A DNA stretch of 64,000 nucleotides from Macrostomum hystrix (GCA_950097015.1 CATNEN010000015.1:806001-870000), one strand, 5' to 3'; numbered from the stretch's first letter, positions 20,161-56,987 are shown. The notes: generated by a model not told the origin, from the sequence alone. Made by a program: numbers and translations.

Positions 20161-20195
<35 letters not shown>

Positions 20196-22613: not shown

Positions 22614-22648
<35 letters not shown>

Positions 22649-24722: not shown

Positions 24723-25318
24723 TCTAATATACTAAAAATGAAAATCTTGCTTGCTTGTTCGTAATTGATTTTCTCCCGAACGGCTCAACCGATTTTCACC
24801 ATTTCTTCACCAAAAGATGCCAAATATGGGGACAATTATACACGTATTTTTATTAAGCTTAACTTTATTGCTAAAGGGATTAAATATTCGAAAAACAAGA
24901 TTTTTCAAAGGTCAAACATCTTGGCCTATTGAGAATTTTACTCACTGCCACTGAATTAGAATTGCATCGTCAAATTGCGCAACAACCCCTAGCTGATTGA
25001 ATTTGAAGCCTGCACTCTGGAGACAAATTGGAAATAAATGTACACAACCAACCGCGAGACTGAGTGTACTCTATTTTCTTACTTCATTGTACAAAGCCAG
25101 AACTTTGAGAATTCATTTTATAAGGCTGATTTTTGCACCCACTAACCAACAGTCGGAATAGCCGATGTGTAGGCACTAGGAATAAGGTTAGGCTAGGCTA
25201 GGGTTCGATTCTGCACTGCGTCAAATCATTTAGACTAATTTTCAGCCAGTAGTGATTGAAGACTATTTTAATTTATTTTTTTCATTTCGTAAATAAAATA
25301 TCATAAATCATAGCACAC

Positions 25319-28300
25319 CGGCTAAAACAGAGTTTGAATCATGGCTAAACCAGAGTCTGAATCATGGCTAAACCAGAGTCTGAATCATGGCTAAACCAGA
25401 GTCTGAATCATGGCTAAACCAGAGTCTGAATCATGGCTAAACCAGAGTCTGAATCATGGCTAAACCAGAGTCTGAATCATGGCTAAACCAGAGTCTGAAT
25501 CATGGCTAAACCAGAGTCTGGATCATGGCTAAACCAGCGTCTGAATCATGGCTAAACCAGAGTCTGAATCAAGGCTAAACCAGAGTCTGAATCATGGCTA
25601 CACCAGAGTCTGAATCATGGCTACACCAGAGTCTGAATCATGGCTACACCAGAGTCTGAATCATGGCTACACCAGAGTCTGAATCATGGCTAAACCAGAG
25701 TTTGAATCATAGCTAAACCAGAGTCTGAATCATGGCTAAACCAGAGTCTGAATCATTGCTACACCAGAGTCTGAATCATGGCTCATAGCTAAACCAGAGT
25801 CTGAATCATGGCTAAACCAGAGTCTGAATCATGGCTACACCAGAGTCTGAATCATGGCTAAACCAGAGTTTAAATCAAAGCTAAACAAGCGTCTGAATCA
25901 TGGCAAAACCAGAGTTTGAATCATAGCTAAACCAGAGTCTGAATCATGGCTAAACCAGAGTCTGAATCATGGCTAAACCAGAGTCTGAATCATGGCTAAA
26001 CCAGAGTCTGAATCATGGCTAAACCAGAGTCTGAATCATGGCTAAACCAGAGTCTGAATCATGGCTACACCAGAGTCTGAATCATGGCTAAACCAAAGTC
26101 TGAATCATTGCTACACCAGAGTCTGAATCATGGCTCATAGCTAAACCAGAGTCTGAATCATGGCTAAACCAGAGTCTGAATCATGGCTACACCAGAGTCT
26201 GAATCATGGCTAAACCAGAGTTTGAATCATAGCTAAACCAGAGTCTGAATCATGGCTAAACCAGAGTCTGAATCATTGCTACACCAGAGTCTGAATCATG
26301 GCTCATAGCTAAACCAGAGTCTGAATCATGGCTAAACCAGAGTCTGAATCATGGCTACACCAGAGTCTGAATCATGGCTAAACCAGAGTTTAAATCAAAG
26401 CTAAACAAGCGTCTGAATCATGGCAAAACCAGAGTTTCAATCATGGCTAAACCAGAGACTAAATCATGGCTACACCAGGGTTTGAATCATGGCAAAACCA
26501 GAGTTTTAATCATGGCTAAACAAGAGTTTGAATGATGGCTAAACCAGAGTTTGAATCATGGCTAAACAAGCGTCTGAATCATGGCTAAACCAGAGTCTGA
26601 ATCATGGCTAAACCAGAGTTTGAATCATAGCTAAACCAGAGTCTGAATCATGGCTAAACCAGAGTCTGAATCATGGCTAAACCAGAGTCTGAATCATGGC
26701 TAAACCAGAGTCTGAATCATGGCTAAACCAGAGTCTGAATCATGGCTAAACCAGAGTCTGAATCATGGCTAAACCAGAGTCTGAATCATGGCTACACCAG
26801 AGTCTGAATCATGGCTAAACCAAAGTCTGAATCATTGCTACACCAGAGTCTGAATCATGGCTCATAGCTAAACCAGAGTCTGAATCATGGCTAAACCAGA
26901 GTCTGAATCATGGCTACACCAGAGTCTGAATCATGGCTAAACCAGAGTTTAAATCAAAGCTAAACAAGCGTCTGAATCATGGCAAAACCAGAGTTTCAAT
27001 CATGGCTAAACCAGAGACTAAATCATGGCTACACCAGGGTTTGAATCATGGCAAAACCAGAGTTTGAATCATGGCTAAACCAGAGTCTGAATCATGGGTA
27101 AACCAGAGTCTGAATCATGGCTAAACCAGAGTCTGAATCATGGCTAAACCAGAGTCTGAATCATGGCTAAACCAGAGTCTGAATCATGGCTAAACCAGAG
27201 TCTGAATCATGGCTAAACCAGAGTCTGAATCATGGCTAAACCAGAGTCTGAATCATGGCTAAACCAGAGTCTGGATCATGGCTAAACCAGCGTCTGAATC
27301 ATGGCTAAACCAGAGTCTGAATCAAGGCTAAACCAGAGTCTGAATCATGGCTAAACCAGAGTCTGAATCATGGCTACACCAGAGTCTGAATCATGGCTAC
27401 ACCAGAGTCTGAATCATGGCTACACCAGAGTCTGAATCATGGCTAAACCAGAGTTTGAATCATAGCTAAACCAGAGTCTGAATCATGGCTAAACCAGAGT
27501 CTGAATCATTGCTACACCAGAGTCTGAATCATGGCTCATAGCTAAACCAGAGTCTGAATCATGGCTAAACCAGAGTCTGAATCATGGCTACACCAGAGTC
27601 TGAATCATGGCTAAACCAGAGTTTAAATCAAAGCTAAACAAGCGTCTGAATCATGGCAAAACCAGAGTTTGAATCATAGCTAAACCAGAGTCTGAATCAT
27701 GGCTAAACCAGAGTCTGAATCATGGCTAAACCAGAGTCTGAATCATGGCTAAACCAGAGTCTGAATCATGGCTAAACCAGAGTCTGAATCATGGCTAAAC
27801 CAGAGTCTGAATCATGGCTACACCAGAGTCTGAATCATGGCTAAACCAAAGTCTGAATCATTGCTACACCAGAGTCTGAATCATGGCTCATAGCTAAACC
27901 AGAGTCTGAATCATGGCTAAAACAGAGTCTGAATCATGGCTACACCAGAGTCTGAATCATGGCTAAACCAGAGTTTGAATCATAGCTAAACCAGAGTCTG
28001 AATCATGGCTAAACCAGAGTCTGAATCATTGCTACACCAGAGTCTGAATCATGGCTCATAGCTAAACCAGAGTCTGAATCATGGCTAAACCAGAGTCTGA
28101 ATCATGGCTACACCAGAGTCTGAATCATGGCTAAACCAGAGTTTAAATCAAAGCTAAACAAGCGTCTGAATCATGGCAAAACCAGAGTTTCAATCATGGC
28201 TAAACCAGAGACTAAATCATGGCTACACCAGGGTTTGAATCATGGCAAAACCAGAGTTTGAATCATGGCTAAACCAGAGTCTGAATCATGGCTAAACCAG

Positions 28301-31300
28301 AGTCTGAATCATGGCTAAACCAGAGTCTGAATCATGGCTAAACCAGAGTCTGAATCATGACTACACCAGAGTCTGAATCATGGCTAAACCAGAGTTTAAA
28401 TCAAAGCTAAACAAGCGTCTGAATCATGGCAAAACCAGAGTTTCAATCATGGCTAAACCAGAGACTAAATCATGGCTACACCAGGGTTTGAATCATGGCA
28501 AAACCAGAGTTTTAATCATGGCTAAACAAGAGTTTGAATGATGGCTAAACCAGAGTTTGAATCATGGCTAAACAAGCGTCTGAATCATGGCTAAACCAGA
28601 GTCTGAATCATGGCTAAACCAGAGTTTGAATCATAGCTAAACCAGAGTCTGAATCATGGCTAAACCAGAGTCTGAATCATGGCTAAACCAGAGTCTGAAT
28701 CATGGCTAAACCAGAGTCTGAATCATGGCTAAACCAGAGTCTGAATCATGGCTAAACCAGAGTCTGAATCATGGCTAAACCAGAGTCTGAATCATGGCTA
28801 CACCAGAGTCTGAATCATGGCTAAACCAAAGTCTGAATCATTGCTACACCAGAGTCTGAATCATGGCTCATAGCTAAACCAGAGTCTGAATCATGGCTAA
28901 ACCAGAGTCTGAATCATGGCTACACCAGAGTCTGAATCATGGCTAAACCAGAGTTTAAATCAAAGCTAAACAAGCGTCTGAATCATGGCAAAACCAGAGT
29001 TTCAATCATGGCTAAACCAGAGACTAAATCATGGCTACACCAGGGTTTGAATCATGGCAAAACCAGAGTTTGAATCATGGCTAAACCAGAGTCTGAATCA
29101 TGGCTAAACCAGAGTCTGAATCATGGCTAAACCAGAGTCTGAATCATGGCTAAACCAGAGTCTGAATCATTGCTACACCAGAGTCTGAATCATGGCTCAT
29201 AGCTAAACCAGAGTCTGAATCATGGCTAAACCAGAGTCTGAATCATGGCTACACCAGAGTCTGAATCATGGCTAAACCAGAGTTTAAATCAAAGCTAAAC
29301 AAGCGTCTGAATCATGGCAAAACCAGAGTTTGAATCATAGCTAAACCAGAGTCTGAATCATGGCTAAACCAGAGTCTGAATCATGGCTAAACCAGAGTCT
29401 GAATCATGGCTAAACCAGAGTCTGAATCATGGCTAAACCAGAGTCTGAATCATGGCTAAACCAGAGTCTGAATCATGGCTACACCAGAGTCTGAATCATG
29501 GCTAAACCAAAGTCTGAATCATTGCTACACCAGAGTCTGAATCATGGCTCATAGCTAAACCAGAGTCTGAATCATGGCTAAACCAGAGTCTGAATCATGG
29601 CTACACCAGAGTCTGAATCATGGCTAAACCAGAGTTTGAATCATGGCTCATAGCTAAACCAGAGTCTGAATCATGGCTAAACCAGAGTCTGAATCATGGC
29701 TACACCAGAGTCTGAATCATGGCTAAACCAGAGTCTGAATCATGGCTAAACCAGAGTCTGAATCATGGCTAAACCAGAGTCTGAATCATGGCTAAACCAG
29801 AGTCTGAATCATGGCTAAACCAGAGTCTGAATCATGGCTAAACCAGAGTCTGAATCATGGCTAAACCAGAGTCTGAATCATGGCTAAACCAGAGTCTGAA
29901 TCATGGCTAAACCAGAGTCTGGATCATGGCTAAACCAGCGTCTGAATCATGGCTAAACCAGAGTCTGAATCAAGGCTAAACCAGAGTCTGAATCATGGCT
30001 AAACCAGAGTCTGAATCATGGCTACACCAGAGTCTGAATCATGGCTACACCAGAGTCTGAATCATGGCTACACCAGAGTCTGAATCATGGCTAAACCAGA
30101 GTTTGAATCATAGCTAAACCAGAGTCTGAATCATGGCTAAACCAGAGTCTGAATCATTGCTACACCAGAGTCTGAATCATGGCTCATAGCTAAACCAGAG
30201 TCTGAATCATGGCTAAACCAGAGTCTGAATCATGGCTACACCAGAGTCTGAATCATGGCTAAACCAGAGTTTAAATCAAAGCTAAACAAGCGTCTGAATC
30301 ATGGCAAAACCAGAGTTTGAATCATAGCTAAACCAGAGTCTGAATCATGGCTAAACCAGAGTCTGAATCATGGCTAAACCAGAGTCTGAATCATGGCTAA
30401 ACCAGAGTCTGAATCATGGCTAAACCAGAGTCTGAATCATGGCTAAACCAGAGTCTGAATCATGGCTACACCAGAGTCTGAATCATGGCTAAACCAAAGT
30501 CTGAATCATTGCTACACCAGAGTCTGAATCATGGCTCATAGCTAAACCAGAGTCTGAATCATGGCTAAAACAGAGTCTGAATCATGGCTACACCAGAGTC
30601 TGAATCATGGCTAAACCAGAGTTTGAATCATAGCTAAACCAGAGTCTGAATCATGGCTAAACCAGAGTCTGAATCATTGCTACACCAGAGTCTGAATCAT
30701 GGCTCATAGCTAAACCAGAGTCTGAATCATGGCTAAACCAGAGTCTGAATCATGGCTACACCAGAGTCTGAATCATGGCTAAACCAGAGTTTAAATCAAA
30801 GCTAAACAAGCGTCTGAATCATGGCAAAACCAGAGTTTCAATCATGGCTAAACCAGAGACTAAATCATGGCTACACCAGGGTTTGAATCATGGCAAAACC
30901 AGAGTTTGAATCATGGCTAAACCAGAGTCTGAATCATGGCTAAACCAGAGTCTGAATCATGGCTAAACCAGAGTCTGAATCATGGCTAAACCAGAGTCTG
31001 AATCATGGCTACACCAGAGTCTGAATCATGGCTAAACCAGAGTTTAAATCAAAGCTAAACAAGCGTCTGAATCATGGCAAAACCAGAGTTTCAATCATGG
31101 CTAAACCAGAGACTAAATCATGGCTACACCAGGGTTTGAATCATGGCAAAACCAGAGTTTTAATCATGGCTAAACAAGAGTTTGAATGATGGCTAAACCA
31201 GAGTTTGAATCATGGCTAAACAAGCGTCTGAATCATGGCTAAACCAGAGTCTGAATCATGGCTAAACCAGAGTTTGAATCATAGCTAAACCAGAGTCTGA

Positions 31301-34300
31301 ATCATGGCTAAACCAGAGTCTGAATCATGGCTAAACCAGAGTCTGAATCATGGCTAAACCAGAGTCTGAATCATGGCTAAACCAGAGTCTGAATCATGGC
31401 TAAACCAGAGTCTGAATCATGGCTAAACCAGAGTCTGAATCATGGCTACACCAGAGTCTGAATCATGGCTAAACCAAAGTCTGAATCATTGCTACACCAG
31501 AGTCTGAATCATGGCTCATAGCTAAACCAGAGTCTGAATCATGGCTAAACCAGAGTCTGAATCATGGCTACACCAGAGTCTGAATCATGGCTAAACCAGA
31601 GTTTAAATCAAAGCTAAACAAGCGTCTGAATCATGGCAAAACCAGAGTTTCAATCATGGCTAAACCAGAGACTAAATCATGGCTACACCAGGGTTTGAAT
31701 CATGGCAAAACCAGAGTTTGAATCATGGCTAAACCAGAGTCTGAATCATGGCTAAACCAGAGTCTGAATCATGGCTAAACCAGAGTCTGAATCATGGCTA
31801 AACCAGAGTCTGAATCATGGCTAAACCAGAGTCTGAATCATGGCTAAACCAGAGTCTGAATCATGGCTAAACCAGAGTCTGAATCATGGCTAAACCAGAG
31901 TCTGAATCATGGCTAAACCAGAGTCTGGATCATGGCTAAACCAGCGTCTGAATCATGGCTAAACCAGAGTCTGAATCAAGGCTAAACCAGAGTCTGAATC
32001 ATGGCTAAACCAGAGTCTGAATCATGGCTACACCAGAGTCTGAATCATGGCTACACCAGAGTCTGAATCATGGCTACACCAGAGTCTGAATCATGGCTAA
32101 ACCAGAGTTTGAATCATAGCTAAACCAGAGTCTGAATCATGGCTAAACCAGAGTCTGAATCATTGCTACACCAGAGTCTGAATCATGGCTCATAGCTAAA
32201 CCAGAGTCTGAATCATGGCTAAACCAGAGTCTGAATCATGGCTACACCAGAGTCTGAATCATGGCTAAACCAGAGTTTAAATCAAAGCTAAACAAGCGTC
32301 TGAATCATGGCAAAACCAGAGTTTGAATCATAGCTAAACCAGAGTCTGAATCATGGCTAAACCAGAGTCTGAATCATGGCTAAACCAGAGTCTGAATCAT
32401 GGCTAAACCAGAGTCTGAATCATGGCTAAACCAGAGTCTGAATCATGGCTAAACCAGAGTCTGAATCATGGCTACACCAGAGTCTGAATCATGGCTAAAC
32501 CAAAGTCTGAATCATTGCTACACCAGAGTCTGAATCATGGCTCATAGCTAAACCAGAGTCTGAATCATGGCTAAACCAGAGTCTGAATCATGGCTACACC
32601 AGAGTCTGAATCATGGCTAAACCAGAGTTTGAATCATAGCTAAACCAGAGTCTGAATCATGGCTAAACCAGAGTCTGAATCATTGCTACACCAGAGTCTG
32701 AATCATGGCTCATAGCTAAACCAGAGTCTGAATCATGGCTAAACCAGAGTCTGAATCATGGCTACACCAGAGTCTGAATCATGGCTAAACCAGAGTTTAA
32801 ATCAAAGCTAAACAAGCGTCTGAATCATGGCAAAACCAGAGTTTCAATCATGGCTAAACCAGAGACTAAATCATGGCTACACCAGGGTTTGAATCATGGC
32901 AAAACCAGAGTTTTAATCATGGCTAAACAAGAGTTTGAATGATGGCTAAACCAGAGTTTGAATCATGGCTAAACAAGCGTCTGAATCATGGCTAAACCAG
33001 AGTCTGAATCATGGCTAAACCAGAGTTTGAATCATAGCTAAACCAGAGTCTGAATCATGGCTAAACCAGAGTCTGAATCATGGCTAAACCAGAGTCTGAA
33101 TCATGGCTAAACCAGAGTCTGAATCATGGCTAAACCAGAGTCTGAATCATGGCTAAACCAGAGTCTGAATCATGGCTAAACCAGAGTCTGAATCATGGCT
33201 ACACCAGAGTCTGAATCATGGCTAAACCAAAGTCTGAATCATTGCTACACCAGAGTCTGAATCATGGCTCATAGCTAAACCAGAGTCTGAATCATGGCTA
33301 AACCAGAGTCTGAATCATGGCTACACCAGAGTCTGAATCATGGCTAAACCAGAGTTTAAATCAAAGCTAAACAAGCGTCTGAATCATGGCAAAACCAGAG
33401 TTTCAATCATGGCTAAACCAGAGACTAAATCATGGCTACACCAGGGTTTGAATCATGGCAAAACCAGAGTTTGAATCATGGCTAAACCAGAGTCTGAATC
33501 ATGGCTAAACCAGAGTCTGAATCATGGCTAAACCAGAGTCTGAATCATGGCTAAACCAGAGTCTGAATCATGGCTAAACCAGAGTCTGAATCATGGCTAA
33601 ACCAGAGTCAGAATCATGGCTAAACCAGAGTCTGAATCATGGCTAAACCAGAGTCTGAATCATGGCTAAACCAGAGTCTGGATCATGGCTAAACCAGCGT
33701 CTGAATCATGGCTAAACCAGAGTCTGAATCAAGGCTAAACCAGAGTCTGAATCATGGCTAAACCAGAGTCTGAATCATGGCTACACCAGAGTCTGAATCA
33801 TGGCTACACCAGAGTCTGAATCATGGCTACACCAGAGTCTGAATCATGGCTAAACCAGAGTTTGAATCATAGCTAAACCAGAGTCTGAATCATGGCTAAA
33901 CCAGAGTCTGAATCATTGCTACACCAGAGTCTGAATCATGGCTCATAGCTAAACCAGAGTCTGAATCATGGCTAAACCAGAGTCTGAATCATGGCTACAC
34001 CAGAGTCTGAATCATGGCTAAACCAGAGTTTAAATCAAAGCTAAACAAGCGTCTGAATCATGGCAAAACCAGAGTTTGAATCATAGCTAAACCAGAGTCT
34101 GAATCATGGCTAAACCAGAGTCTGAATCATGGCTAAACCAGAGTCTGAATCATGGCTAAACCAGAGTCTGAATCATGGCTAAACCAGAGTCTGAATCATG
34201 GCTAAACCAGAGTCTGAATCATGGCTACACCAGAGTCTGAATCATGGCTAAACCAAAGTCTGAATCATTGCTACACCAGAGTCTGAATCATGGCTCATAG

Positions 34301-37300
34301 CTAAACCAGAGTCTGAATCATGGCTAAACCAGAGTCTGAATCATAGCTAAACCAGAGTCTGAATCATGGCTAAACCAGAGTCTGAATCATTGCTACACCA
34401 GAGTCTGAATCATGGCTCATAGCTAAACCAGAGTCTGAATCATGGCTAAACCAGAGTCTGAATCATGGCTACACCAGAGTCTGAATCATGGCTAAACCAG
34501 AGTTTAAATCAAAGCTAAACAAGCGTCTGAATCATGGCAAAACCAGAGTTTGAATCATAGCTAAACCAGAGTCTGAATCATGGCTAAACCAGAGTCTGAA
34601 TCATGGCTAAACCAGAGTCTGAATCATGGCTAAACCAGAGTCTGAATCATGGCTAAACCAGAGTCTGAATCATGGCTAAACCAGAGTCTGAATCATGGCT
34701 ACACCAGAGTCTGAATCATGGCTAAACCAAAGTCTGAATCATTGCTACACCAGAGTCTGAATCATGGCTCATAGCTAAACCAGAGTCTGAATCATGGCTA
34801 AACCAGAGTCTGAATCATGGCTACACCAGAGTCTGAATCATGGCTAAACCAGAGTTTGAATCATAGCTAAACCAGAGTCTGAATCATGGCTAAACCAGAG
34901 TCTGAATCATTGCTACACCAGAGTCTGAATCATGGCTCATAGCTAAACCAGAGTCTGAATCATGGCTAAACCAGAGTCTGAATCATGGCTACACCAGAGT
35001 CTGAATCATGGCTAAACCAGAGTTTAAATCAAAGCTAAACAAGCGTCTGAATCATGGCAAAACCAGAGTTTCAATCATGGCTAAACCAGAGACTAAATCA
35101 TGGCTACACCAGGGTTTGAATCATGGCAAAACCAGAGTTTTAATCATGGCTAAACAAGAGTTTGAATGATGGCTAAACCAGAGTTTGAATCATGGCTAAA
35201 CAAGCGTCTGAATCATGGCTAAACCAGAGTCTGAATCATGGCTAAACCAGAGTTTGAATCATAGCTAAACCAGAGTCTGAATCATGGCTAAACCAGAGTC
35301 TGAATCATGGCTAAACCAGAGTCTGAATCATGGCTAAACCAGAGTCTGAATCATGGCTAAACCAGAGTCTGAATCATGGCTAAACCAGAGTCTGAATCAT
35401 GGCTAAACCAGAGTCTGAATCATGGCTACACCAGAGTCTGAATCATGGCTAAACCAAAGTCTGAATCATTGCTACACCAGAGTCTGAATCATGGCTCATA
35501 GCTAAACCAGAGTCTGAATCATGGCTAAACCAGAGTCTGAATCATGGCTACACCAGAGTCTGAATCATGGCTAAACCAGAGTTTAAATCAAAGCTAAACA
35601 AGCGTCTGAATCATGGCAAAACCAGAGTTTCAATCATGGCTAAACCAGAGACTAAATCATGGCTACACCAGGGTTTGAATCATGGCAAAACCAGAGTTTG
35701 AATCATGGCTAAACCAGAGTCTGAATCATGGCTAAACCAGAGTCTGAATCATGGCTAAACCAGAGTCTGAATCATGGCTAAACCAGAGTCTGAATCATGG
35801 CTAAACCAGAGTCTGAATCATGGCTAAACCAGAGTCTGAATCATGGCTAAACCAGAGTCTGAATCATGGCTAAACCAGAGTCTGAATCATGGCTAAACCA
35901 GAGTCTGGATCATGGCTAAACCAGCGTCTGAATCATGGCTAAACCAGAGTCTGAATCAAGGCTAAACCAGAGTCTGAATCATGGCTAAACCAGAGTCTGA
36001 ATCATGGCTACACCAGAGTCTGAATCATGGCTACACCAGAGTCTGAATCATGGCTACACCAGAGTCTGAATCATGGCTAAACCAGAGTTTGAATCATAGC
36101 TAAACCAGAGTCTGAATCATGGCTAAACCAGAGTCTGAATCATTGCTACACCAGAGTCTGAATCATGGCTCATAGCTAAACCAGAGTCTGAATCATGGCT
36201 AAACCAGAGTCTGAATCATGGCTACACCAGAGTCTGAATCATGGCTAAACCAGAGTTTAAATCAAAGCTAAACAAGCGTCTGAATCATGGCAAAACCAAA
36301 GTCTGAATCATTGCTACACCAGAGTCTGAATCATGGCTCATAGCTAAACCAGAGTCTGAATCATGGCTAAACCAGAGTCTGAATCATGGCTACACCAGAG
36401 TCTGAATCATGGCTAAACCAGAGTTTAAATCAAAGCTAAACAAGCGTCTGAATCATGGCAAAACCAGAGTTTCAATCATGGCTAAACCAGAGACTAAATC
36501 ATGGCTACACCAGGGTTTGAATCATGGCAAAACCAGAGTTTGAATCATGGCTAAACCAGAGTCTGAATCATGGCTAAACCAGAGTCTGAATCATGGCTAA
36601 ACCAGAGTCTGAATCATGGCTAAACCAGAGTCTGAATCATGGCTAAACCAGAGTCTGAATCATGGCTAAACCAGAGTCAGAATCATGGCTAAACCAGAGT
36701 CTGAATCATGGCTAAACCAGAGTCTGAATCATGGCTAAACCAGAGTCTGGATCATGGCTAAACCAGCGTCTGAATCATGGCTAAACCAGAGTCTGAATCA
36801 AGGCTAAACCAGAGTCTGAATCATGGCTAAACCAGAGTCTGAATCATGGCTACACCAGAGTCTGAATCATGGCTACACCAGAGTCTGAATCATGGCTACA
36901 CCAGAGTCTGAATCATGGCTAAACCAGAGTTTGAATCATAGCTAAACCAGAGTCTGAATCATGGCTAAACCAGAGTCTGAATCATTGCTACACCAGAGTC
37001 TGAATCATGGCTCATAGCTAAACCAGAGTCTGAATCATGGCTAAACCAGAGTCTGAATCATGGCTACACCAGAGTCTGAATCATGGCTAAACCAGAGTTT
37101 AAATCAAAGCTAAACAAGCGTCTGAATCATGGCAAAACCAGAGTTTGAATCATAGCTAAACCAGAGTCTGAATCATGGCTAAACCAGAGTCTGAATCATG
37201 GCTAAACCAGAGTCTGAATCATGGCTAAACCAGAGTCTGAATCATGGCTAAACCAGAGTCTGAATCATGGCTAAACCAGAGTCTGAATCATGGCTACACC

Positions 37301-43300: not shown

Positions 43301-46300
43301 GAATGATGGCTAAACCAGAGTTTGAATCATGGCTAAACAAGCGTCTGAATCATGGCTAAACCAGAGTCTGAATCATGGCTAAACCAGAGTTTGAATCATA
43401 GCTAAACCAGAGTCTGAATCATGGCTAAACCAGAGTCTGAATCATGGCTAAACCAGAGTCTGAATCATGGCTAAACCAGAGTCTGAATCATGGCTAAACC
43501 AGAGTCTGAATCATGGCTAAACCAGAGTCTGAATCATGGCTAAACCAGAGTCTGAATCATGGCTACACCAGAGTCTGAATCATGGCTAAACCAAAGTCTG
43601 AATCATTGCTACACCAGAGTCTGAATCATGGCTCATAGCTAAACCAGAGTCTGAATCATGGCTAAACCAGAGTCTGAATCATGGCTACACCAGAGTCTGA
43701 ATCATGGCTAAACCAGAGTTTAAATCAAAGCTAAACAAGCGTCTGAATCATGGCAAAACCAGAGTTTCAATCATGGCTAAACCAGAGACTAAATCATGGC
43801 TACACCAGGGTTTGAATCATGGCAAAACCAGAGTTTGAATCATGGCTAAACCAGAGTCTGAATCATGGCTAAACCAGAGTCTGAATCATGGCTAAACCAG
43901 AGTCTGAATCATGGCTAAACCAGAGTCTGAATCATGGCTAAACCAGAGTCTGAATCATGGCTAAACCAGAGTCAGAATCATGGCTAAACCAGAGTCTGAA
44001 TCATGGCTAAACCAGAGTCTGAATCATGGCTAAACCAGAGTCTGGATCATGGCTAAACCAGCGTCTGAATCATGGCTAAACCAGAGTCTGAATCAAGGCT
44101 AAACCAGAGTCTGAATCATGGCTAAACCAGAGTCTGAATCATGGCTACACCAGAGTCTGAATCATGGCTACACCAGAGTCTGAATCATGGCTACACCAGA
44201 GTCTGAATCATGGCTAAACCAGAGTTTGAATCATAGCTAAACCAGAGTCTGAATCATGGCTAAACCAGAGTCTGAATCATTGCTACACCAGAGTCTGAAT
44301 CATGGCTCATAGCTAAACCAGAGTCTGAATCATGGCTAAACCAGAGTCTGAATCATGGCTACACCAGAGTCTGAATCATGGCTAAACCAGAGTTTAAATC
44401 AAAGCTAAACAAGCGTCTGAATCATGGCAAAACCAGAGTTTGAATCATAGCTAAACCAGAGTCTGAATCATGGCTAAACCAGAGTCTGAATCATGGCTAA
44501 ACCAGAGTCTGAATCATGGCTAAACCAGAGTCTGAATCATGGCTAAACCAGAGTCTGAATCATGGCTAAACCAGAGTCTGAATCATGGCTACACCAGAGT
44601 CTGAATCATGGCTAAACCAAAGTCTGAATCATTGCTACACCAGAGTCTGAATCATGGCTCATAGCTAAACCAGAGTCTGAATCATGGCTAAACCAGAGTC
44701 TGAATCATAGCTAAACCAGAGTCTGAATCATGGCTAAACCAGAGTCTGAATCATTGCTACACCAGAGTCTGAATCATGGCTCATAGCTAAACCAGAGTCT
44801 GAATCATGGCTAAACCAGAGTCTGAATCATGGCTACACCAGAGTCTGAATCATGGCTAAACCAGAGTTTAAATCAAAGCTAAACAAGCGTCTGAATCATG
44901 GCAAAACCAGAGTTTGAATCATAGCTAAACCAGAGTCTGAATCATGGCTAAACCAGAGTCTGAATCATGGCTAAACCAGAGTCTGAATCATGGCTAAACC
45001 AGAGTCTGAATCATGGCTAAACCAGAGTCTGAATCATGGCTAAACCAGAGTCTGAATCATGGCTACACCAGAGTCTGAATCATGGCTAAACCAAAGTCTG
45101 AATCATTGCTACACCAGAGTCTGAATCATGGCTCATAGCTAAACCAGAGTCTGAATCATGGCTAAACCAGAGTCTGAATCATGGCTACACCAGAGTCTGA
45201 ATCATGGCTAAACCAGAGTTTGAATCATAGCTAAACCAGAGTCTGAATCATGGCTAAACCAGAGTCTGAATCATTGCTACACCAGAGTCTGAATCATGGC
45301 TCATAGCTAAACCAGAGTCTGAATCATGGCTAAACCAGAGTCTGAATCATGGCTACACCAGAGTCTGAATCATGGCTAAACCAGAGTTTAAATCAAAGCT
45401 AAACAAGCGTCTGAATCATGGCAAAACCAGAGTTTCAATCATGGCTAAACCAGAGACTAAATCATGGCTACACCAGGGTTTGAATCATGGCAAAACCAGA
45501 GTTTTAATCATGGCTAAACAAGAGTTTGAATGATGGCTAAACCAGAGTTTGAATCATGGCTAAACAAGCGTCTGAATCATGGCTAAACCAGAGTCTGAAT
45601 CATGGCTAAACCAGAGTTTGAATCATAGCTAAACCAGAGTCTGAATCATGGCTAAACCAGAGTCTGAATCATGGCTAAACCAGAGTCTGAATCATGGCTA
45701 AACCAGAGTCTGAATCATGGCTAAACCAGAGTCTGAATCATGGCTAAACCAGAGTCTGAATCATGGCTAAACCAGAGTCTGAATCATGGCTACACCAGAG
45801 TCTGAATCATGGCTAAACCAAAGTCTGAATCATTGCTACACCAGAGTCTGAATCATGGCTCATAGCTAAACCAGAGTCTGAATCATGGCTAAACCAGAGT
45901 CTGAATCATGGCTACACCAGAGTCTGAATCATGGCTAAACCAGAGTTTAAATCAAAGCTAAACAAGCGTCTGAATCATGGCAAAACCAGAGTTTCAATCA
46001 TGGCTAAACCAGAGACTAAATCATGGCTACACCAGGGTTTGAATCATGGCAAAACCAGAGTTTGAATCATGGCTAAACCAGAGTCTGAATCATGGCTAAA
46101 CCAGAGTCTGAATCATGGCTAAACCAGAGTCTGAATCATGGCTAAACCAGAGTCTGAATCATGGCTAAACCAGAGTCTGAATCATGGCTAAACCAGAGTC
46201 TGAATCATGGCTAAACCAGAGTCTGAATCATGGCTAAACCAGAGTCTGAATCATGGCTAAACCAGAGTCTGGATCATGGCTAAACCAGCGTCTGAATCAT

Positions 46301-49300
46301 GGCTAAACCAGAGTCTGAATCAAGGCTAAACCAGAGTCTGAATCATGGCTAAACCAGAGTCTGAATCATGGCTACACCAGAGTCTGAATCATGGCTACAC
46401 CAGAGTCTGAATCATGGCTACACCAGAGTCTGAATCATGGCTAAACCAGAGTTTGAATCATAGCTAAACCAGAGTCTGAATCATGGCTAAACCAGAGTCT
46501 GAATCATTGCTACACCAGAGTCTGAATCATGGCTCATAGCTAAACCAGAGTCTGAATCATGGCTAAACCAGAGTCTGAATCATGGCTACACCAGAGTCTG
46601 AATCATGGCTAAACCAGAGTTTAAATCAAAGCTAAACAAGCGTCTGAATCATGGCAAAACCAGAGTTTGAATCATAGCTAAACCAGAGTCTGAATCATGG
46701 CTAAACCAGAGTCTGAATCATGGCTAAACCAGAGTCTGAATCATGGCTAAACCAGAGTCTGAATCATGGCTAAACCAGAGTCTGAATCATGGCTAAACCA
46801 GAGTCTGAATCATGGCTAAACCAGAGTCTGAATCATGGCTAAACCAGAGTCTGAATCATGGCTAAACCAGAGTCTGAATCATGGCTAAACCAGAGTCTGA
46901 ATCATGGCTAAACCAGAGTCTGGATCATGGCTAAACCAGCGTCTGAATCATGGCTAAACCAGAGTCTGAATCAAGGCTAAACCAGAGTCTGAATCATGGC
47001 TAAACCAGAGTCTGAATCATGGCTACACCAGAGTCTGAATCATGGCTACACCAGAGTCTGAATCATGGCTACACCAGAGTCTGAATCATGGCTAAACCAG
47101 AGTTTGAATCATAGCTAAACCAGAGTCTGAATCATGGCTAAACCAGAGTCTGAATCATTGCTACACCAGAGTCTGAATCATGGCTCATAGCTAAACCAGA
47201 GTCTGAATCATGGCTAAACCAGAGTCTGAATCATGGCTACACCAGAGTCTGAATCATGGCTAAACCAGAGTTTAAATCAAAGCTAAACAAGCGTCTGAAT
47301 CATGGCAAAACCAGAGTTTGAATCATAGCTAAACCAGAGTCTGAATCATGGCTAAACCAGAGTCTGAATCATGGCTAAACCAGAGTCTGAATCATGGCTA
47401 AACCAGAGTCTGAATCATGGCTAAACCAGAGTCTGAATCATGGCTAAACCAGAGTCTGAATCATGGCTACACCAGAGTCTGAATCATGGCTAAACCAAAG
47501 TCTGAATCATTGCTACACCAGAGTCTGAATCATGGCTCATAGCTAAACCAGAGTCTGAATCATGGCTAAAACAGAGTCTGAATCATGGCTACACCAGAGT
47601 CTGAATCATGGCTAAACCAGAGTTTGAATCATAGCTAAACCAGAGTCTGAATCATGGCTAAACCAGAGTCTGAATCATTGCTACACCAGAGTCTGAATCA
47701 TGGCTCATAGCTAAACCAGAGTCTGAATCATGGCTAAACCAGAGTCTGAATCATGGCTACACCAGAGTCTGAATCATGGCTAAACCAGAGTTTAAATCAA
47801 AGCTAAACAAGCGTCTGAATCATGGCAAAACCAGAGTTTCAATCATGGCTAAACCAGAGACTAAATCATGGCTACACCAGGGTTTGAATCATGGCAAAAC
47901 CAGAGTTTGAATCATGGCTAAACCAGAGTCTGAATCATGGCTAAACCAGAGTCTGAATCATGGCTAAACCAGAGTCTGAATCATGGCTAAACCAGAGTCT
48001 GAATCATGGCTACACCAGAGTCTGAATCATGGCTAAACCAGAGTTTAAATCAAAGCTAAACAAGCGTCTGAATCATGGCAAAACCAGAGTTTCAATCATG
48101 GCTAAACCAGAGACTAAATCATGGCTACACCAGGGTTTGAATCATGGCAAAACCAGAGTTTTAATCATGGCTAAACAAGAGTTTGAATGATGGCTAAACC
48201 AGAGTTTGAATCATGGCTAAACAAGCGTCTGAATCATGGCTAAACCAGAGTCTGAATCATGGCTAAACCAGAGTTTGAATCATAGCTAAACCAGAGTCTG
48301 AATCATGGCTAAACCAGAGTCTGAATCATGGCTAAACCAGAGTCTGAATCATGGCTAAACCAGAGTCTGAATCATGGCTAAACCAGAGTCTGAATCATGG
48401 CTAAACCAGAGTCTGAATCATGGCTAAACCAGAGTCTGAATCATGGCTACACCAGAGTCTGAATCATGGCTAAACCAAAGTCTGAATCATTGCTACACCA
48501 GAGTCTGAATCATGGCTCATAGCTAAACCAGAGTCTGAATCATGGCTAAACCAGAGTCTGAATCATGGCTACACCAGAGTCTGAATCATGGCTAAACCAG
48601 AGTTTAAATCAAAGCTAAACAAGCGTCTGAATCATGGCAAAACCAGAGTTTGAATCATAGCTAAACCAGAGTCTGAATCATGGCTAAACCAGAGTCTGAA
48701 TCATGGCTAAACCAGAGTCTGAATCATGGCTAAACCAGAGTCTGAATCATGGCTAAACCAGAGTCTGAATCATGGCTAAACCAGAGTCTGAATCATGGCT
48801 ACACCAGAGTCTGAATCATGGCTAAACCAAAGTCTGAATCATTGCTACACCAGAGTCTGAATCATGGCTCATAGCTAAACCAGAGTCTGAATCATGGCTA
48901 AACCAGAGTCTGAATCATGGCTACACCAGAGTCTGAATCATGGCTAAACCAGAGTTTGAATCATAGCTAAACCAGAGTCTGAATCATGGCTAAACCAGAG
49001 TCTGAATCATTGCTACACCAGAGTCTGAATCATGGCTCATAGCTAAACCAGAGTCTGAATCATGGCTAAACCAGAGTCTGAATCATGGCTACACCAGAGT
49101 CTGAATCATGGCTAAACCAGAGTTTAAATCAAAGCTAAACAAGCGTCTGAATCATGGCAAAACCAGAGTTTCAATCATGGCTAAACCAGAGACTAAATCA
49201 TGGCTACACCAGGGTTTGAATCATGGCAAAACCAGAGTTTTAATCATGGCTAAACAAGAGTTTGAATGATGGCTAAACCAGAGTTTGAATCATGGCTAAA

Positions 49301-52300
49301 CAAGCGTCTGAATCATGGCTAAACCAGAGTCTGAATCATGGCTAAACCAGAGTTTGAATCATAGCTAAACCAGAGTCTGAATCATGGCTAAACCAGAGTC
49401 TGAATCATGGCTAAACCAGAGTCTGAATCATGGCTAAACCAGAGTCTGAATCATGGCTAAACCAGAGTCTGAATCATGGCTAAACCAGAGTCTGAATCAT
49501 GGCTAAACCAGAGTCTGAATCATGGCTACACCAGAGTCTGAATCATGGCTAAACCAAAGTCTGAATCATTGCTACACCAGAGTCTGAATCATGGCTCATA
49601 GCTAAACCAGAGTCTGAATCATGGCTAAACCAGAGTCTGAATCATGGCTACACCAGAGTCTGAATCATGGCTAAACCAGAGTTTAAATCAAAGCTAAACA
49701 AGCGTCTGAATCATGGCAAAACCAGAGTTTCAATCATGGCTAAACCAGAGACTAAATCATGGCTACACCAGGGTTTGAATCATGGCAAAACCAGAGTTTG
49801 AATCATGGCTAAACCAGAGTCTGAATCATGGCTAAACCAGAGTCTGAATCATGGCTAAACCAGAGTCTGAATCATGGCTAAACCAGAGTCTGAATCATGG
49901 CTAAACCAGAGTCTGAATCATGGCTAAACCAGAGTCAGAATCATGGCTAAACCAGAGTCTGAATCATGGCTAAACCAGAGTCTGAATCATGGCTAAACCA
50001 GAGTCTGGATCATGGCTAAACCAGCGTCTGAATCATGGCTAAACCAGAGTCTGAATCAAGGCTAAACCAGAGTCTGAATCATGGCTAAACCAGAGTCTGA
50101 ATCATGGCTACACCAGAGTCTGAATCATGGCTACACCAGAGTCTGAATCATGGCTACACCAGAGTCTGAATCATGGCTAAACCAGAGTTTGAATCATAGC
50201 TAAACCAGAGTCTGAATCATGGCTAAACCAGAGTCTGAATCATTGCTACACCAGAGTCTGAATCATGGCTCATAGCTAAACCAGAGTCTGAATCATGGCT
50301 AAACCAGAGTCTGAATCATGGCTACACCAGAGTCTGAATCATGGCTAAACCAGAGTTTAAATCAAAGCTAAACAAGCGTCTGAATCATGGCAAAACCAGA
50401 GTTTGAATCATAGCTAAACCAGAGTCTGAATCATGGCTAAACCAGAGTCTGAATCATGGCTAAACCAGAGTCTGAATCATGGCTAAACCAGAGTCTGAAT
50501 CATGGCTAAACCAGAGTCTGAATCATGGCTAAACCAGAGTCTGAATCATGGCTACACCAGAGTCTGAATCATGGCTAAACCAAAGTCTGAATCATTGCTA
50601 CACCAGAGTCTGAATCATGGCTCATAGCTAAACCAGAGTCTGAATCATGGCTAAACCAGAGTCTGAATCATGGCTACACCAGAGTCTGAATCATGGCTAA
50701 ACCAGAGTTTGAATCATAGCTAAACCAGAGTCTGAATCATGGCTAAACCAGAGTCTGAATCATTGCTACACCAGAGTCTGAATCATGGCTCATAGCTAAA
50801 CCAGAGTCTGAATCATGGCTAAACCAGAGTCTGAATCATGGCTACACCAGAGTCTGAATCATGGCTAAACCAGAGTTTAAATCAAAGCTAAACAAGCGTC
50901 TGAATCATGGCAAAACCAGAGTTTGAATCATAGCTAAACCAGAGTCTGAATCATGGCTAAACCAGAGTCTGAATCATGGCTAAACCAGAGTCTGAATCAT
51001 GGCTAAACCAGAGTCTGAATCATGGCTAAACCAGAGTCTGAATCATGGCTAAACCAGAGTCTGAATCATGGCTAAACCAAAGTCTGAATCATTGCTACAC
51101 CAGAGTCTGAATCATGGCTCATAGCTAAACCAGAGTCTGAATCATGGCTAAACCAGAGTCTGAATCATGGCTACACCAGAGTCTGAATCATGGCTAAACC
51201 AGAGTTTAAATCAAAGCTAAACAAGCGTCTGAATCATGGCAAAACCAGAGTTTCAATCATGGCTAAACCAGAGACTAAATCATGGCTACACCAGGGTTTG
51301 AATCATGGCAAAACCAGAGTTTGAATCATGGCTAAACCAGAGTCTGAATCATGGCTAAACCAGAGTCTGAATCATGGCTAAACCAGAGTCTGAATCATGG
51401 CTAAACCAGAGTCTGAATCATGGCTAAACCAGAGTCTGAATCATGGCTAAACCAGAGTCAGAATCATGGCTAAACCAGAGTCTGAATCATGGCTAAACCA
51501 GAGTCTGAATCATGGCTAAACCAGAGTCTGGATCATGGCTAAACCAGCGTCTGAATCATGGCTAAACCAGAGTCTGAATCAAGGCTAAACCAGAGTCTGA
51601 ATCATGGCTAAACCAGAGTCTGAATCATGGCTACACCAGAGTCTGAATCATGGCTACACCAGAGTCTGAATCATGGCTACACCAGAGTCTGAATCATGGC
51701 TAAACCAGAGTTTGAATCATAGCTAAACCAGAGTCTGAATCATGGCTAAACCAGAGTCTGAATCATGGCTAAACCAGAGTCTGAATCATGGCTAAACCAG
51801 AGTCTGAATCATGGCTAAACCAGAGTCTGAATCATGGCTAAACCAGAGTCTGAATCATGGCTACACCAGAGTCTGAATCATGGCTAAACCAAAGTCTGAA
51901 TCATTGCTACACCAGAGTCTGAATCATGGCTCATAGCTAAACCAGAGTCTGAATCATGGCTAAACCAGAGTCTGAATCATGGCTACACCAGAGTCTGAAT
52001 CATGGCTAAACCAGAGTTTGAATCATAGCTAAACCAGAGTCTGAATCATGGCTAAACCAGAGTCTGAATCATTGCTACACCAGAGTCTGAATCATGGCTC
52101 ATAGCTAAACCAGAGTCTGAATCATGGCTAAACCAGAGTCTGAATCATGGCTACACCAGAGTCTGAATCATGGCTAAACCAGAGTTTAAATCAAAGCTAA
52201 ACAAGCGTCTGAATCATGGCAAAACCAGAGTTTGAATCATAGCTAAACCAGAGTCTGAATCATGGCTAAACCAGAGTCTGAATCATGGCTAAACCAGAGT

Positions 52301-55300
52301 CTGAATCATGGCTAAACCAGAGTCTGAATCATGGCTAAACCAAAGTCTGAATCATTGCTACACCAGAGTCTGAATCATGGCTCATAGCTAAACCAGAGTC
52401 TGAATCATGGCTAAACCAGAGTCTGAATCATGGCTACACCAGAGTCTGAATCATGGCTAAACCAGAGTTTAAATCAAAGCTAAACAAGCGTCTGAATCAT
52501 GGCAAAACCAGAGTTTCAATCATGGCTAAACCAGAGACTAAATCATGGCTACACCAGGGTTTGAATCATGGCAAAACCAGAGTTTTAATCATGGCTAAAC
52601 AAGAGTTTGAATGATGGCTAAACCAGAGTTTGAATCATGGCTAAACAAGCGTCTGAATCATGGCTAAACCAGAGTCTGAATCATGGCTAAACCAGAGTTT
52701 GAATCATAGCTAAACCAGAGTCTGAATCATGGCTAAACCAGAGTCTGAATCATGGCTAAACCAGAGTCTGAATCATGGCTAAACCAGAGTCTGAATCATG
52801 GCTAAACCAGAGTCTGAATCATGGCTAAACCAGAGTCTGAATCATGGCTAAACCAGAGTCTGAATCATGGCTACACCAGAGTCTGAATCATGGCTAAACC
52901 AAAGTCTGAATCATTGCTACACCAGAGTCTGAATCATGGCTCATAGCTAAACCAGAGTCTGAATCATGGCTAAACCAGAGTCTGAATCATGGCTACACCA
53001 GAGTCTGAATCATGGCTAAACCAGAGTTTAAATCAAAGCTAAACAAGCGTCTGAATCATGGCAAAACCAGAGTTTCAATCATGGCTAAACCAGAGACTAA
53101 ATCATGGCTACACCAGGGTTTGAATCATGGCAAAACCAGAGTTTGAATCATGGCTAAACAAGAGTTTGAATCATGGCTAAACCAGAGTTTGAATCATGGC
53201 TAAACAAGCGTCTGAATCATGGCTAAACCAGAGTCTGAATCATGGCTAAACCAGAGTCTGAATCATGGCTCAACCAGAGTCTGGATCATGGCTAAACCAG
53301 AGTCTGAATCATGGCTAAACCAGAGTCTGAATCATGGCTAAACCAGAGTCTGAATCATGGCTAAACCAGAGTCTGAATCATGGCTAAACCAGAGTCTGAA
53401 TCATGGCTAAACCAGAGTCTGGATCATGGCTAAACCAGAGTCTGAATCATGGCTAAACCAGAGTCTGAATTATGGCTAAACCAGAGTCTGAATCATTGCT
53501 AAACCAGAGTCTGAATCATGGCTACACCAGAGTCTGAATCATGGCTACACCAGAGTCTGAATCATGGCTAAACCAAAGTCTGAATCATTGCTACACCAGA
53601 GTCTGAATCATGGCTCATAGCTAAACCAGAGTCTGAATCATGGCTAAACCAGAGTCTGAATCATGGCTACACCAGAGTCTGAATCATGGCTAAACCAGAG
53701 TTTGAATCATAGCTAAACCAGAGTCTGAATCATGGCTAAACCAGAGTCTGAATCATTGCTACACCAGAGTCTGAATCATGGCTCATAGCTAAACCAGAGT
53801 CTGAATCATGGCTAAACCAGAGTCTGAATCATGGCTACACCAGAGTCTGAATCATGGCTAAACCAGAGTTTAAATCAAAGCTAAACAAGCGTCTGAATCA
53901 TGGCAAAACCAGAGTTTGAATCATAGCTAAACCAGAGTCTGAATCATGGCTAAACCAGAGTCTGAATCATGGCTAAACCAGAGTCTGAATCATGGCTAAA
54001 CCAGAGTCTGAATCATGGCTAAACCAGAGTCTGAATCATGGCTACACCAGAGTCTGAATCATGGCTACACCAGAGTCTGAATCATGGCTAAACCAAAGTC
54101 TGAATCATGGCTCATAGCTAAACCAGAGTCTGAATCATGGCTAAACCAGAGTCTGAATCATGGCTACACCAGAGTCTGAATCATGGCTAAACCAGAGTTT
54201 AAATCAAAGCTAAACAAGCGTCTGAATCATGGCAAAACCAGAGTTTCAATCATGGCTAAACCAGAGACTAAATCATGGCTACACCAGGGTTTGAATCATG
54301 GCAAAACCAGAGTTTTAATCATGGCTAAACAAGAGTTTGAATGATGGCTAAACCAGAGTTTGAATCATGGCTAAACAAGCGTCTGAATCATGGCTAAACC
54401 AGAGTCTGAATCATGGCTAAACCAGAGTTTGAATCATAGCTAAACCAGAGTCTGAATCATGGCTAAACCAGAGTCTGAATCATGGCTAAACCAGAGTCTG
54501 AATCATGGCTAAACCAGAGTCTGAATCATGGCTAAACCAGAGTCTGAATCATGGCTAAACCAGAGTCTGAATCATGGCTACACCAGAGTCTGAATCATGG
54601 CTAAACCAAAGTCTGAATCATTGCTACACCAGAGTCTGAATCATGGCTCATAGCTAAACCAGAGTCTGAATCATGGCTAAACCAGAGTCTGAATCATGGC
54701 TACACCAGAGTCTGAATCATGGCTAAACCAGAGTTTAAATCAAAGCTAAACAAGCGTCTGAATCATGGCAAAACCAGAGTTTCAATCATGGCTAAACCAG
54801 AGACTAAATCATGGCTACACCAGGGTTTGAATCATGGCAAAACCAGAGTTTGAATCATGGCTAAACAAGAGTTTGAATCATGGCTAAACCAGAGTTTGAA
54901 TCATGGCTAAACAAGCGTCTGAATCATGGCTAAACCAGAGTCTGAATCATGGCTAAACCAGAGTCTGAATCATGGCTAAACCAGAGTCTGGATCATGGCT
55001 AAACCAGAGTCTGAATCATGGCTAAACCAGAGTCTGAATCATGGCTAAACCAGAGTCTGAATCATGGCTAAACCAGAGTCTGAATCATGGCTAAACCAGA
55101 GTCTGAATCATGGCTAAACCAGAGTCTGGATCATGGCTAAACCAGAGTCTGAATCATGGCTAAACCAGAGTCTGAATTATGGCTAAACCAGAGTCTGAAT
55201 CATGGCTAAACCAGAGTCTGAATCATGGCTACACCAGAGTCTGAATCATGGCTACACCAGAGTCTGAATCATGGCTACACCAGAGTCTGAATCATGGCTA

Positions 55301-56075
55301 CACCAGAGTCTGAATCATGGCTAAACCAGAGTTTGAATCATAGCTAAACCAGAGTCTGAATCATGACTAAACCAGAGTCTGAATCATTGCTACACCAGAG
55401 TCTGAATCATGGCTCATAGCTAAACCAGAGTCTGAATCATGGCTAAACCAGAGTCTGAATCATGGCTACACCAGAGTCTGAATCATGGCTAAACCAGAGG
55501 TTAAATCAAAGCTAAACAAGCGTCTGAATCATGGCAAAACCAGAGTTTGAATCATAGCTAAACCAGAGTCTGAATCATGGCTAAACCAGAGTCTGAATCA
55601 TGGCTAAACCAGAGTCTGAATCATGGCTAAACCAGAGTCTGAATCATGGCTAAACCAGAGTCTGAATCATGGCTAAACCAGAGTCTGAATCATGGCTACA
55701 CCAGAGTCTGAATCATGGCTAAACCAAAGTCTGAATCATTGCTACACCAGAGTCTGAATCATGGCTCATAGCTAAACCAGAGTCTGAATCATGGCTAAAC
55801 CAGAGTCTGAATCATGGCTACACCAGAGTCTGAATCATGGCTAAACCAGAGTTTAAATCAAAGCTAAACAAGCGTCTGAATCATGGCAAAACCAGAGTTT
55901 CAATCATGGCTAAACCAGAGACTAAATCATGGCTACACCAGGGTTTGAATCATGGCAAAACCAGAGTTTGAATCATGGCTAAACCAGCGTTTGAATCATG
56001 GCCAACCAGCGTCTGAATCATGGCTAAACCAGAGTTTGAATCATGGCAAAATCAGAGTTTGAATCATAGCTAAAT
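25319..56075 (+). repeat. 23-bp satellite array (~30.7 kb, roughly 1,300 monomers), consensus CATGGCTAAACCAGAGTCTGAAT, with higher-order repeats
   Basis: 23-bp periodicity (e.g. TGAATC at 25381 and 25404); recurrent variant monomers in fixed order; a 30-bp variant (GGCT-CATAGCT-AAACC); degenerate monomers at both edges. Confidence 0.98.
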
Positions 56076-56078
56076 CGG

Positions 56079-56875
56079 AACTGGGGGATAATCGTCAACT
56101 GTGGGATAATTGTAAACTGGGGAATCATCATCAAATGGGGGATCATGGTCAACTGGGGATCATTGTCAAATGGGGATCATCATCATTTGGGAGTCATCAT
56201 CAAAGGGGGGATCATGGTCAACTGCGAGATCATTGTCAACTGGGTGATCATCATCAACTGGGGGATCATTGTCAACTAGGGGGATCATTGTCAACTGGGG
56301 TATCATTATCAACTGGGGGATCATCATCAACTGGGTGATCATTGTCAACTGGGGGATCATTGTCATCTGAGGGATCATTGTCAACTGGGGGATCATTGTC
56401 AACTGTGAGATCATTGTCAACTGGGTGATCATTGTCAACTGGGGGATCATTGTCAACTGGGGGATCATTGTCAACTGTGGGATCATTGTCAACTGTGAGA
56501 TCATTGTCAACTGGGGGATCATTGTCAACTGGGGGATCATTGTCAACTGGGTGATCATTGTCAACTGGGGGATCATCATCAACTGGGGGATCATTGTCAA
56601 CTGTGGGATCATTGTCAACTGGGGGATCATTGTCAACAAGGGGATCATTGTCAACTGGGGGATCATTGTCAACTGGGGATCATTGTCAACTGGGGGTTCA
56701 TTGTCAACTGGGGGATCATTGTCAACTGGGGGATCATCATCAACTGGGGGATCATTGTCAACTGGGGATCATTGTCAACTGGGGGTTCATTTTCAACTGG
56801 GGGATCATTGTCAACTGGGGGATCATCATCAACTGGGGGATCATTGTCAACTGGGGGATCATTGTCAACTGGGGG
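56079..56875 (+). repeat. 18-bp minisatellite, consensus CTGGGGGATCATTGTCAA (some 17-bp variants)
   Basis: Periodicity read directly; gives the WGIIVN / QLTMIP / GGSLST repeat ORFs. Confidence 0.95.
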
Positions 56876-56947
56876 TTTATTTTAGCTTTAAAAAGCTGTA
56901 AATTCAGCTGCTAAACAGTATATACAAGACGAATTAAAAATATTTCT

Positions 56948-56976
56948 GCTCCCCGAAGGGGGGCAAAACATGCTAG
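56948..56976 (+). other. Helitron 3' terminal signature: hairpin + CTAG
   Basis: GCTCCCC GAA GGGGGGC stem-loop (one T-G pair), spacer AAAACATG, CTAG, followed by T. Matches the canonical Helitron 3' end (hairpin about 10 nt upstream of CTRR). Confidence 0.75.
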
Positions 56977-56987
56977 TATATACTAAA

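Follow-up and report, generated by a model that had tools for sequence, protein, structure and literature searches.

The 64,000-nt stretch of Macrostomum hystrix DNA examined in this study (GCA_950097015.1, CATNEN010000015.1:806001-870000; hereafter the window, whose coordinates are used throughout unless another contig is named) carries a non-autonomous Helitron in which a 23-bp tandem array of satellite dimensions is enclosed between two recognisable element ends. The copy occupies positions 24723-56976, which corresponds approximately to C15:830,700-863,000 in the genome, and its parts are listed in Table 1. It opens with TC at 24723-24724, followed by 596 bp of non-repetitive DNA in which the longest open reading frame (ORF) listed is at most 55 amino acids (aa). 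The 23-bp array that comes next measures 30,755 bp (1,315 copies, 88% matches); when it was cut at a fixed anchor, 1,280 pieces were obtained, and because the spacings between units are only 23, 30 or 46 bp, with three odd units excepted, the array is uninterrupted. With up to three mismatches allowed, the 23-mer was matched 1,256 times in the window and 0 times in shuffled sequences. An 18-bp array of ~0.8 kb (44.5 copies) follows, then ~70 bp of unique DNA, and finally a 19-nt hairpin (8-bp stem, 3-nt loop) closing 11 nt before the element's terminal CTAG at 56973-56976, after which the next base is host T. The 101-nt 3' segment folds with a z-score of -2.35. This succession of parts had been proposed from the sequence alone, in a reading made before the present analysis (the sequence-only reading), and it was borne out base for base. 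The array is long, homogeneous and of higher-order structure, as expected of a satellite, while its 23-bp unit is of minisatellite size.

Table 1. Features of the Helitron locus in the window, with the rows for the 23-mer element first
Feature	Position	Strand	Basis
5' terminus (TC...) and unique 5' segment of the non-autonomous Helitron	24723..25319	+	At least 40 full-length matches; 451 marker matches
Uninterrupted 23-bp array, ~1,315 units, 35 variant types	25320..56074	+	Tandem Repeats Finder; unit splitting
18-bp array with lineage switch at ~56265-56283	56079..56875	+	Tandem Repeats Finder; unit-string comparison
3' terminal segment: AT-rich stretch with small palindromes, hairpin, terminal CTAG	56876..56976	+	Fold; aligned 3' ends; marker matches
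Two stubs repeating the 5' terminus of the 23-mer element	24663..24686 (24 bp) and 24687..24722 (36 bp)	+	26/36-bp tandem rows in Tandem Repeats Finder
Seven head-to-tail copies of a second Helitron family	10650..24662	+	Junction sequences; 3' and 5' motif matches
Host target flank resembling the element's 5' end (T, five bases, CTAAA)	56977..56990	+	Flank comparison

Both ends of the element belong to one young, high-copy Helitron family. A marker for the 5' end was matched 451 times genome-wide and a marker for the 3' hairpin 556 times, with 0 matches to either in reversed controls. At least 40 near-full-length matches to the 5' segment occur in the window's genome at 96-100% identity, and at least 40 matches to the 3' segment at 92-100% identity. 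The family's normal build consists of a 0.6-kb 5' segment, a 23-mer array of 0.4-4 kb (usually 2-4 kb), an 18-mer array of 0.6-1.4 kb and the hairpin-CTAG end, an order shared by four complete small copies. The sequence-only reading, which held that a non-autonomous Helitron with both termini is retained here, had named in advance the observation that would speak against it, namely that the 5' segment and the hairpin-CTAG segment do not co-occur in other copies. What was found is that the 5' segment runs into the 23-mer in 30/30 sampled 5' loci, that the 18-mer precedes the 3' end in 30/30 sampled 3' loci, and that pairs of the two markers are common at distances of 2.3-7.4 kb; the TC and hairpin-CTAG ends in the window thus match the ends of a single family.

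The 3' part of the element has a more complex ancestry. Its last 101 nt are 100% identical to those of 22 other copies and 93.9% identical to those of its closest siblings on C38 and C34, and its last 184 nt match the most abundant sublineage exactly. The strings of 18-mer units follow the siblings L070/L071 to ~56264 and the abundant sublineage from ~56284, so that the element is a mosaic whose two sublineages meet within the 18-mer array. Family members have therefore exchanged sequence inside their arrays. The different origin of the last 0.7 kb means that two copies contributed sequence, which would also be expected if two unrelated partial elements happened to flank an independent satellite. 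However, both sublineages belong to the same family and share its layout, with the 5' end always leading into the 23-mer and the 3' end always following the 18-mer, and paired markers are common at the spacing given above. In addition, the junction between the 23-mer and 18-mer arrays is 100% identical to that of complete siblings, and the switch lies within the 18-mer array and not at an element end. An origin from unrelated elements is therefore extremely improbable, and it was rejected on marker co-occurrence, paired spans and junction identity to complete siblings.

In an alignment of more than 30 5' ends from different surroundings, the shared start is TC(C/T)A(C/A)TATACTAAAAATG; ~50 of ~50 aligned 3' ends finish in ...TGCTAG, and where family copies abut, CTAG joins TC directly. 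Likeness between the window element and other copies ends at 56976-56978. The host base on the 3' side is T in 23 of 24 solo flanks, while the host base on the 5' side, among eight solo copies, is A in four (the coding copy described below included), G in two and T in two, with variable TC/TCC stacks. Canonical Helitrons are defined by a 5' TC, a 3' CTRR and a palindrome of 16-20 nt located ~11 bp from the 3' end (PMC4067079), and they insert between host A and T without duplicating the target site. The element has the 5' TC, a 3' end of the CTRR form (CTAG) and the palindrome ~11 bp from the 3' end, and it is a terminally complete, non-coding copy of a canonical-type Helitron family.

A coding relative of ~18.8 kb is present on contig C1 (L064+L065). 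Its 5' segment is 96% identical to that in the window, and its 3' end, which carries the family hairpin, is 88.6% identical over 70 nt. Its 5' segment is followed by a 1-kb 23-mer array and then by open frames matching Rep and helicase families in Pfam (Helitron_like_N, 6.9e-46; PIF1, 3.5e-39; Pif1 2B domain), with the Rep part matching Helraiser, the bat Helitron transposase, at 1.8e-46. At least six further Rep matches lie between paired family markers 10-24 kb apart. A predicted Rep/PIF1-encoding relative, the putative autonomous partner, shares the element's ends.

This relative also bears on the possibility that the element derives from a Helentron (DINE-1/HINE type) instead of a canonical Helitron. 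Helentron and DINE-1-like elements are marked by subterminal inverted repeats of 12-15 bp, placed 2-4 nt inside the 5' terminus and 38-60 nt inside the 3' terminus, by insertion within TT and by a partner whose Rep/helicase is fused to an APE endonuclease. The window element has central tandem repeats and an inverted match between its 5' terminus and a subterminal 12-mer ~49 nt from the 3' end, although this match is imperfect (~9 of 11 positions, with a 2-nt indel); moreover, the comparators chosen in the sequence-only reading (DINE-TR1 and the oyster HINEs) are Helentron-derived. Nevertheless, a Helentron derivation is very unlikely given the TC...CTAG ends, the hairpin 11 nt from the end, the match of the partner's Rep to Helraiser, and a 5' host T in only two of eight solo copies. 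Scanning six open frames of the one coding copy examined (L064+L065) revealed no endonuclease family, and in this copy no ORF of at least 60 aa lies between the helicase end and the 31-mer array that follows. Helentron/DINE-1 membership, suggested by the 5' motif and the central repeats, was rejected on the termini and the partner protein.

The coding copy contains further arrays, comprising a 31-mer and a 22/44-mer as well as a second 23-mer array (L064 7373-9587, L065 5888-6909 and 6908-7257), and an inverted 23-mer fragment lies between two Rep frames (L064 3593-3695). The 23-mer Helitron family accumulates several unrelated minisatellites.

Compared to other members of its family, the window copy is exceptionally long. 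Exact-match markers were paired on contigs C1 and C2 among the matches listed (the first 100 places per marker), which yielded 36 5'/3' pairs, 25 of them spanning 2.3-7.4 kb. The 30 pairs that enclose no Rep match have a median span of 4.5 kb, and the six that enclose one span 10-24 kb. Measured between both ends, the copies on these contigs are mostly 2.3-7.4 kb long, against ~32 kb here, or ~7x the median length. Genome-wide, the 23-mer (up to three mismatches) was matched 36,957 times, equivalent to ~0.85 Mb or 0.39% of 220 Mb, with 1,256 of these matches in the window. A 53-bp marker formed by two adjacent variant units was found 117 times genome-wide, including 69 in the window array, and no other locus holds more than 11 among the matches listed (all but 17 of the 117). 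The window array is the largest of its subtype among the matches listed.

The order of unit variants indicates how this length may have been reached. Each unit type was assigned a letter and the arrays were read as strings, with the four copies on C38, C34, C7 and C5 serving as siblings since their 5' segments are closest to that in the window (98.3-98.6% identity). The opening variant string of the window array is common to all four siblings, and the closing string is exactly that of the C38 and C34 copies, which contain ~165 and ~125 units, respectively, compared to ~1,315 in the window. Across the 23-mer/18-mer junction, identity to the C38 copy is exact for 763 bp (55442-56204). The four siblings represent separate insertions, because their 3' flanks differ. 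The excess material in the window consists of ~15 higher-order blocks of 73-111 units (1.75-2.2 kb), marked by a recurring three-unit motif that is found 27-129 units apart; the small siblings already hold approximately three such blocks. The dominant periods of the array are 1,753 bp, which is the commonest block, and a super-period of 10,364 bp. An exact duplicate of 6,142 bp is present (30157-36298 and 40521-46662), along with further exact internal duplicates of 3,207 and 3,046 bp, and the duplication is nested, with 3.0-kb blocks ~3.1 kb apart and 6.1-kb blocks 10.4 kb apart. Since these duplicates do not differ at all while the sibling 5' segments differ by 1.4%, the duplications are much younger than the split from the siblings.

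These comparisons point to a recent and local expansion of the 23-mer array, by approximately ten-fold, within one element. The pre-existing higher-order pattern could have provided the register for repeated unequal exchange, and out-of-register exchange or replication slippage between blocks would then have occurred after the split from the siblings. Amplification would have taken place at this locus, with both termini left intact. Overall, it is highly likely that the window holds a complete Helitron copy whose 23-mer array has grown ~ten-fold to 30.7 kb while both ends remained untouched. The sequence-only reading had called the locus a snapshot of satellite birth; the local expansion of the array is upheld, but the birth of the repeat is not, because the 23-mer is already a dispersed repeat of ~0.85 Mb. 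Its proposal that the satellite array travels as cargo of the element is supported by siblings at unrelated sites, whose arrays, ten times smaller, keep the same order of variants.

Several observations weigh against this interpretation. The exact 6-kb internal duplicates mean that the assembled length could err by several blocks. The array may instead have grown in a source copy that was then transposed at full size. The 5' host base is not consistently A and the TC/TCC stacks are ragged, so the 5' boundary and an A|T target are not proven. Finally, the length distribution rests on two contigs and on exact-match markers, and it includes five unexplained marker pairs of 11-53 kb on C1 and C2 among the matches listed.

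The first of these observations raises the possibility of an assembly artefact, in which the true array would be 3-6 kb or of intermediate length and the assembler would have looped through near-identical blocks. While exact duplicates of 6,142, 3,207 and 3,046 bp are what such an error would leave behind, the blocks are not uniform: their starts are spaced 27-129 units apart, singleton variants are scattered among them, and distinct indel versions occur. This variant pattern anchors reads and is unlike the product of a simple loop. As the array also lies inside a contig, between single-copy flanks, an artefact is considered quite unlikely.

The second concerns the time and place of growth. 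The array could have reached full size before arrival, either in a source copy or in the course of rolling-circle transposition, where re-replication or a template switch on a circular intermediate would have lengthened it. Rolling-circle models have been published for tandemised parts of Helitrons (Xiong et al. 2016, summarised in PMC12628747), six units of 5' segment plus array with a single 3' end are present at C2:7.18-7.19 Mb, and the mosaic 3' part could reflect template switching. However, no 5' segment is repeated inside the window array, the duplications are nested at several scales, suggesting several rounds, and no comparable array of this subtype was found elsewhere among the matches listed. 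Arrival at full size is therefore unlikely, and local growth of the array within an intact element is preferred.

The expanded element does not stand alone. It is the last (3') member of a 46-kb head-to-tail train of Helitrons, in which it is preceded by seven copies of a second family. Each second-family copy (1.4-2.6 kb) consists of a 5' terminus, a unique segment, a 15-mer array, a GC-rich palindrome of GGAGG type and a ...GCTCG end. Their 3' ends lie at 12301, 13864, 16507, 17897, 20135, 22590 and 24662; the 3' motif was found in seven exact copies against 0 expected, and the next 5' terminus begins 0-3 nt after each 3' end, with the 5' motif found 3-6 nt after each. Both neighbouring stretches, upstream of 10650 and downstream of 56976, are single copy (flanks 10100-10650 and 56977-57500), so the train occupies one site. 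The GCTCG end of the second family differs from the usual CTRR, and TC, which is stacked at the outer 5' end (10644-10651), is absent at most inner junctions. A 3' end of the 15-mer family also lies directly upstream of a 23-mer-family copy on C25 (L012). Between the seventh copy and the 23-mer element, directly upstream of the latter, are the two 5'-terminus stubs (Table 1), the first of which lacks TC; a comparable pair of stubs is located upstream of another family copy on contig C1 (L025).

The host sequence following the element offers a potential explanation for such trains. The element itself starts with T, eight bases and CTAAAA, and its 3' host flank imitates this start (Table 1). Among 24 independent solo 3' flanks (loci L037-L073), 20 contain CTA(A/T)A or CTAAT 7-11 nt after CTAG|T, compared to 2.7% of control windows (n = 1,205) drawn from these flanks (binomial p ~3e-28, for a motif picked after the data had been seen). 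A target preference for sites resembling the 5' end would explain landing before resident 5' ends, and with it the building of trains.

Other arrangements of family parts were also observed. At C2:7179946-7190429 (L008, L009, L014-L017), six tandem units of ~2.0-2.2 kb, each a 5' segment with a 23-mer array, are joined straight to the next 5' terminus without an intervening 3' end. This pattern of many 5' ends and one 3' end is a prediction of rolling-circle read-through models. Additionally, runs of ~330-bp units are found at C2:7190615-7192805, C1:7928864-7930748 and C9:271961-272463. At 77-85% identity, these units match the 5' segment over its first 175 nt. A different hairpin plus CTAG closes each run, with a full copy immediately downstream, and the runs resemble trains of mini-derivatives.

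The surroundings of the train had been described as gene-dense in the sequence-only reading. The flanks are single copy and contain coding-like ORFs, although the protein matches comprise one EGF match at Pfam's threshold and otherwise weak ones (PAN). A cysteine-bearing ORF of 118 aa on the minus strand (56988-57344), with a weak PAN-domain match, stops 12 nt from the Helitron's 3' end, and the 46-kb train may lie within the 3' end of a host gene or immediately beyond it. Further downstream, a 21-bp array (61834-62769; 44.6 copies, 90% matches) comes right after a coding-like ORF with a GT donor-like end and may be intronic; no Helitron termini were seen beside it.

According to a 2025 review (PMC12628747), short internal arrays of Helitron and Helentron elements are commonly found expanded, and several systems can be compared with the window element. 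In DINE-TR1 of the Drosophila virilis group (Dias et al. 2015, cited in PMC12628747) and in DINE-1-like elements (PMC4067079), a non-autonomous rolling-circle element with conserved ends likewise disperses a central tandem repeat that has locally expanded into satellite-like arrays. However, those elements are Helentron derivatives with subterminal inverted repeats, a TT target and endonuclease-coding partners, whereas the window element has canonical Helitron ends. Their repeats are ~150 bp long and enriched in heterochromatin, as opposed to 23- and 18-bp units between single-copy, gene-bearing flanks, and in the window both termini still enclose the expanded array. In the Pacific oyster, Cg_HINE elements (PMC7492417) also number in the hundreds to thousands and carry satellite-like arrays between conserved flanks, and some have two consecutive arrays, like the 23-mer and 18-mer here. 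Their arrays make up 0.85% of the genome, compared to 0.39% for the window's 23-mer. The oyster elements are of Helentron type, and their arrays mostly contain up to five units of ~166 bp, with 29 in the longest (PMC7492417), while 23-mer family arrays usually contain tens to ~165 units and the window copy ~1,315.

Head-to-tail joining has precedents in the tandemised or truncated Helitron arrays of plants (Xiong, Dooner & Du 2016, in PMC12628747) and in the head-to-tail Helitron arrays of bats and flies (Pritham & Feschotte 2007, cited in PMC9248874). Those arrays repeat the element or its 5' part, whereas the window array repeats the internal 23-mer with no element end within it; the train in the window extends over 46 kb and seven plus one elements with base-precise junctions. 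Short-unit minisatellites inside Helitrons are likewise described in Caenorhabditis elegans (bioRxiv 10.64898/2026.08.08.743475), in a study whose abstract treats repeat remodelling and chromatin insulation and not the ten-fold expansion of one copy. A search of the literature for Macrostomum together with Helitron or satellite DNA found nothing specific to this element or to Helitron-borne repeats. Repeat expansion inside Helitrons and Helentrons has thus been published before, and what distinguishes the present locus is how large the array has become between intact ends and that its small siblings survive.

It is widely held that satellites originate from short arrays carried by transposons. 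As a rule, only the extremes are observed, that is, short arrays within elements or long arrays without recognisable ends. The locus described here preserves an intermediate, in which the array has expanded while both termini and the higher-order blocks can still be read, and the same genome contains the 'before' (125-165 units, in independent insertions) and the 'after' (~1,315 units) of one lineage. It is doubtful that the 32-kb copy still functions as a unit of transposition, in spite of its intact TC and hairpin-CTAG ends and the coding relatives in the genome. If it does, a satellite array of 30 kb could be carried ready-made to a new site in one rolling-circle event, and satellite loci could be founded by cargo transfer and not by slow local growth. 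The concept of transposon-seeded satellites, which is already present in reviews (PMC12628747), is unchanged by these findings. What the locus makes checkable in a laboratory animal is whether a higher-order pattern, once present, lets arrays lengthen through unequal exchange of whole blocks, and whether long arrays lower the mobility of the elements that carry them, as in the model discussed for the oyster elements (PMC7492417).

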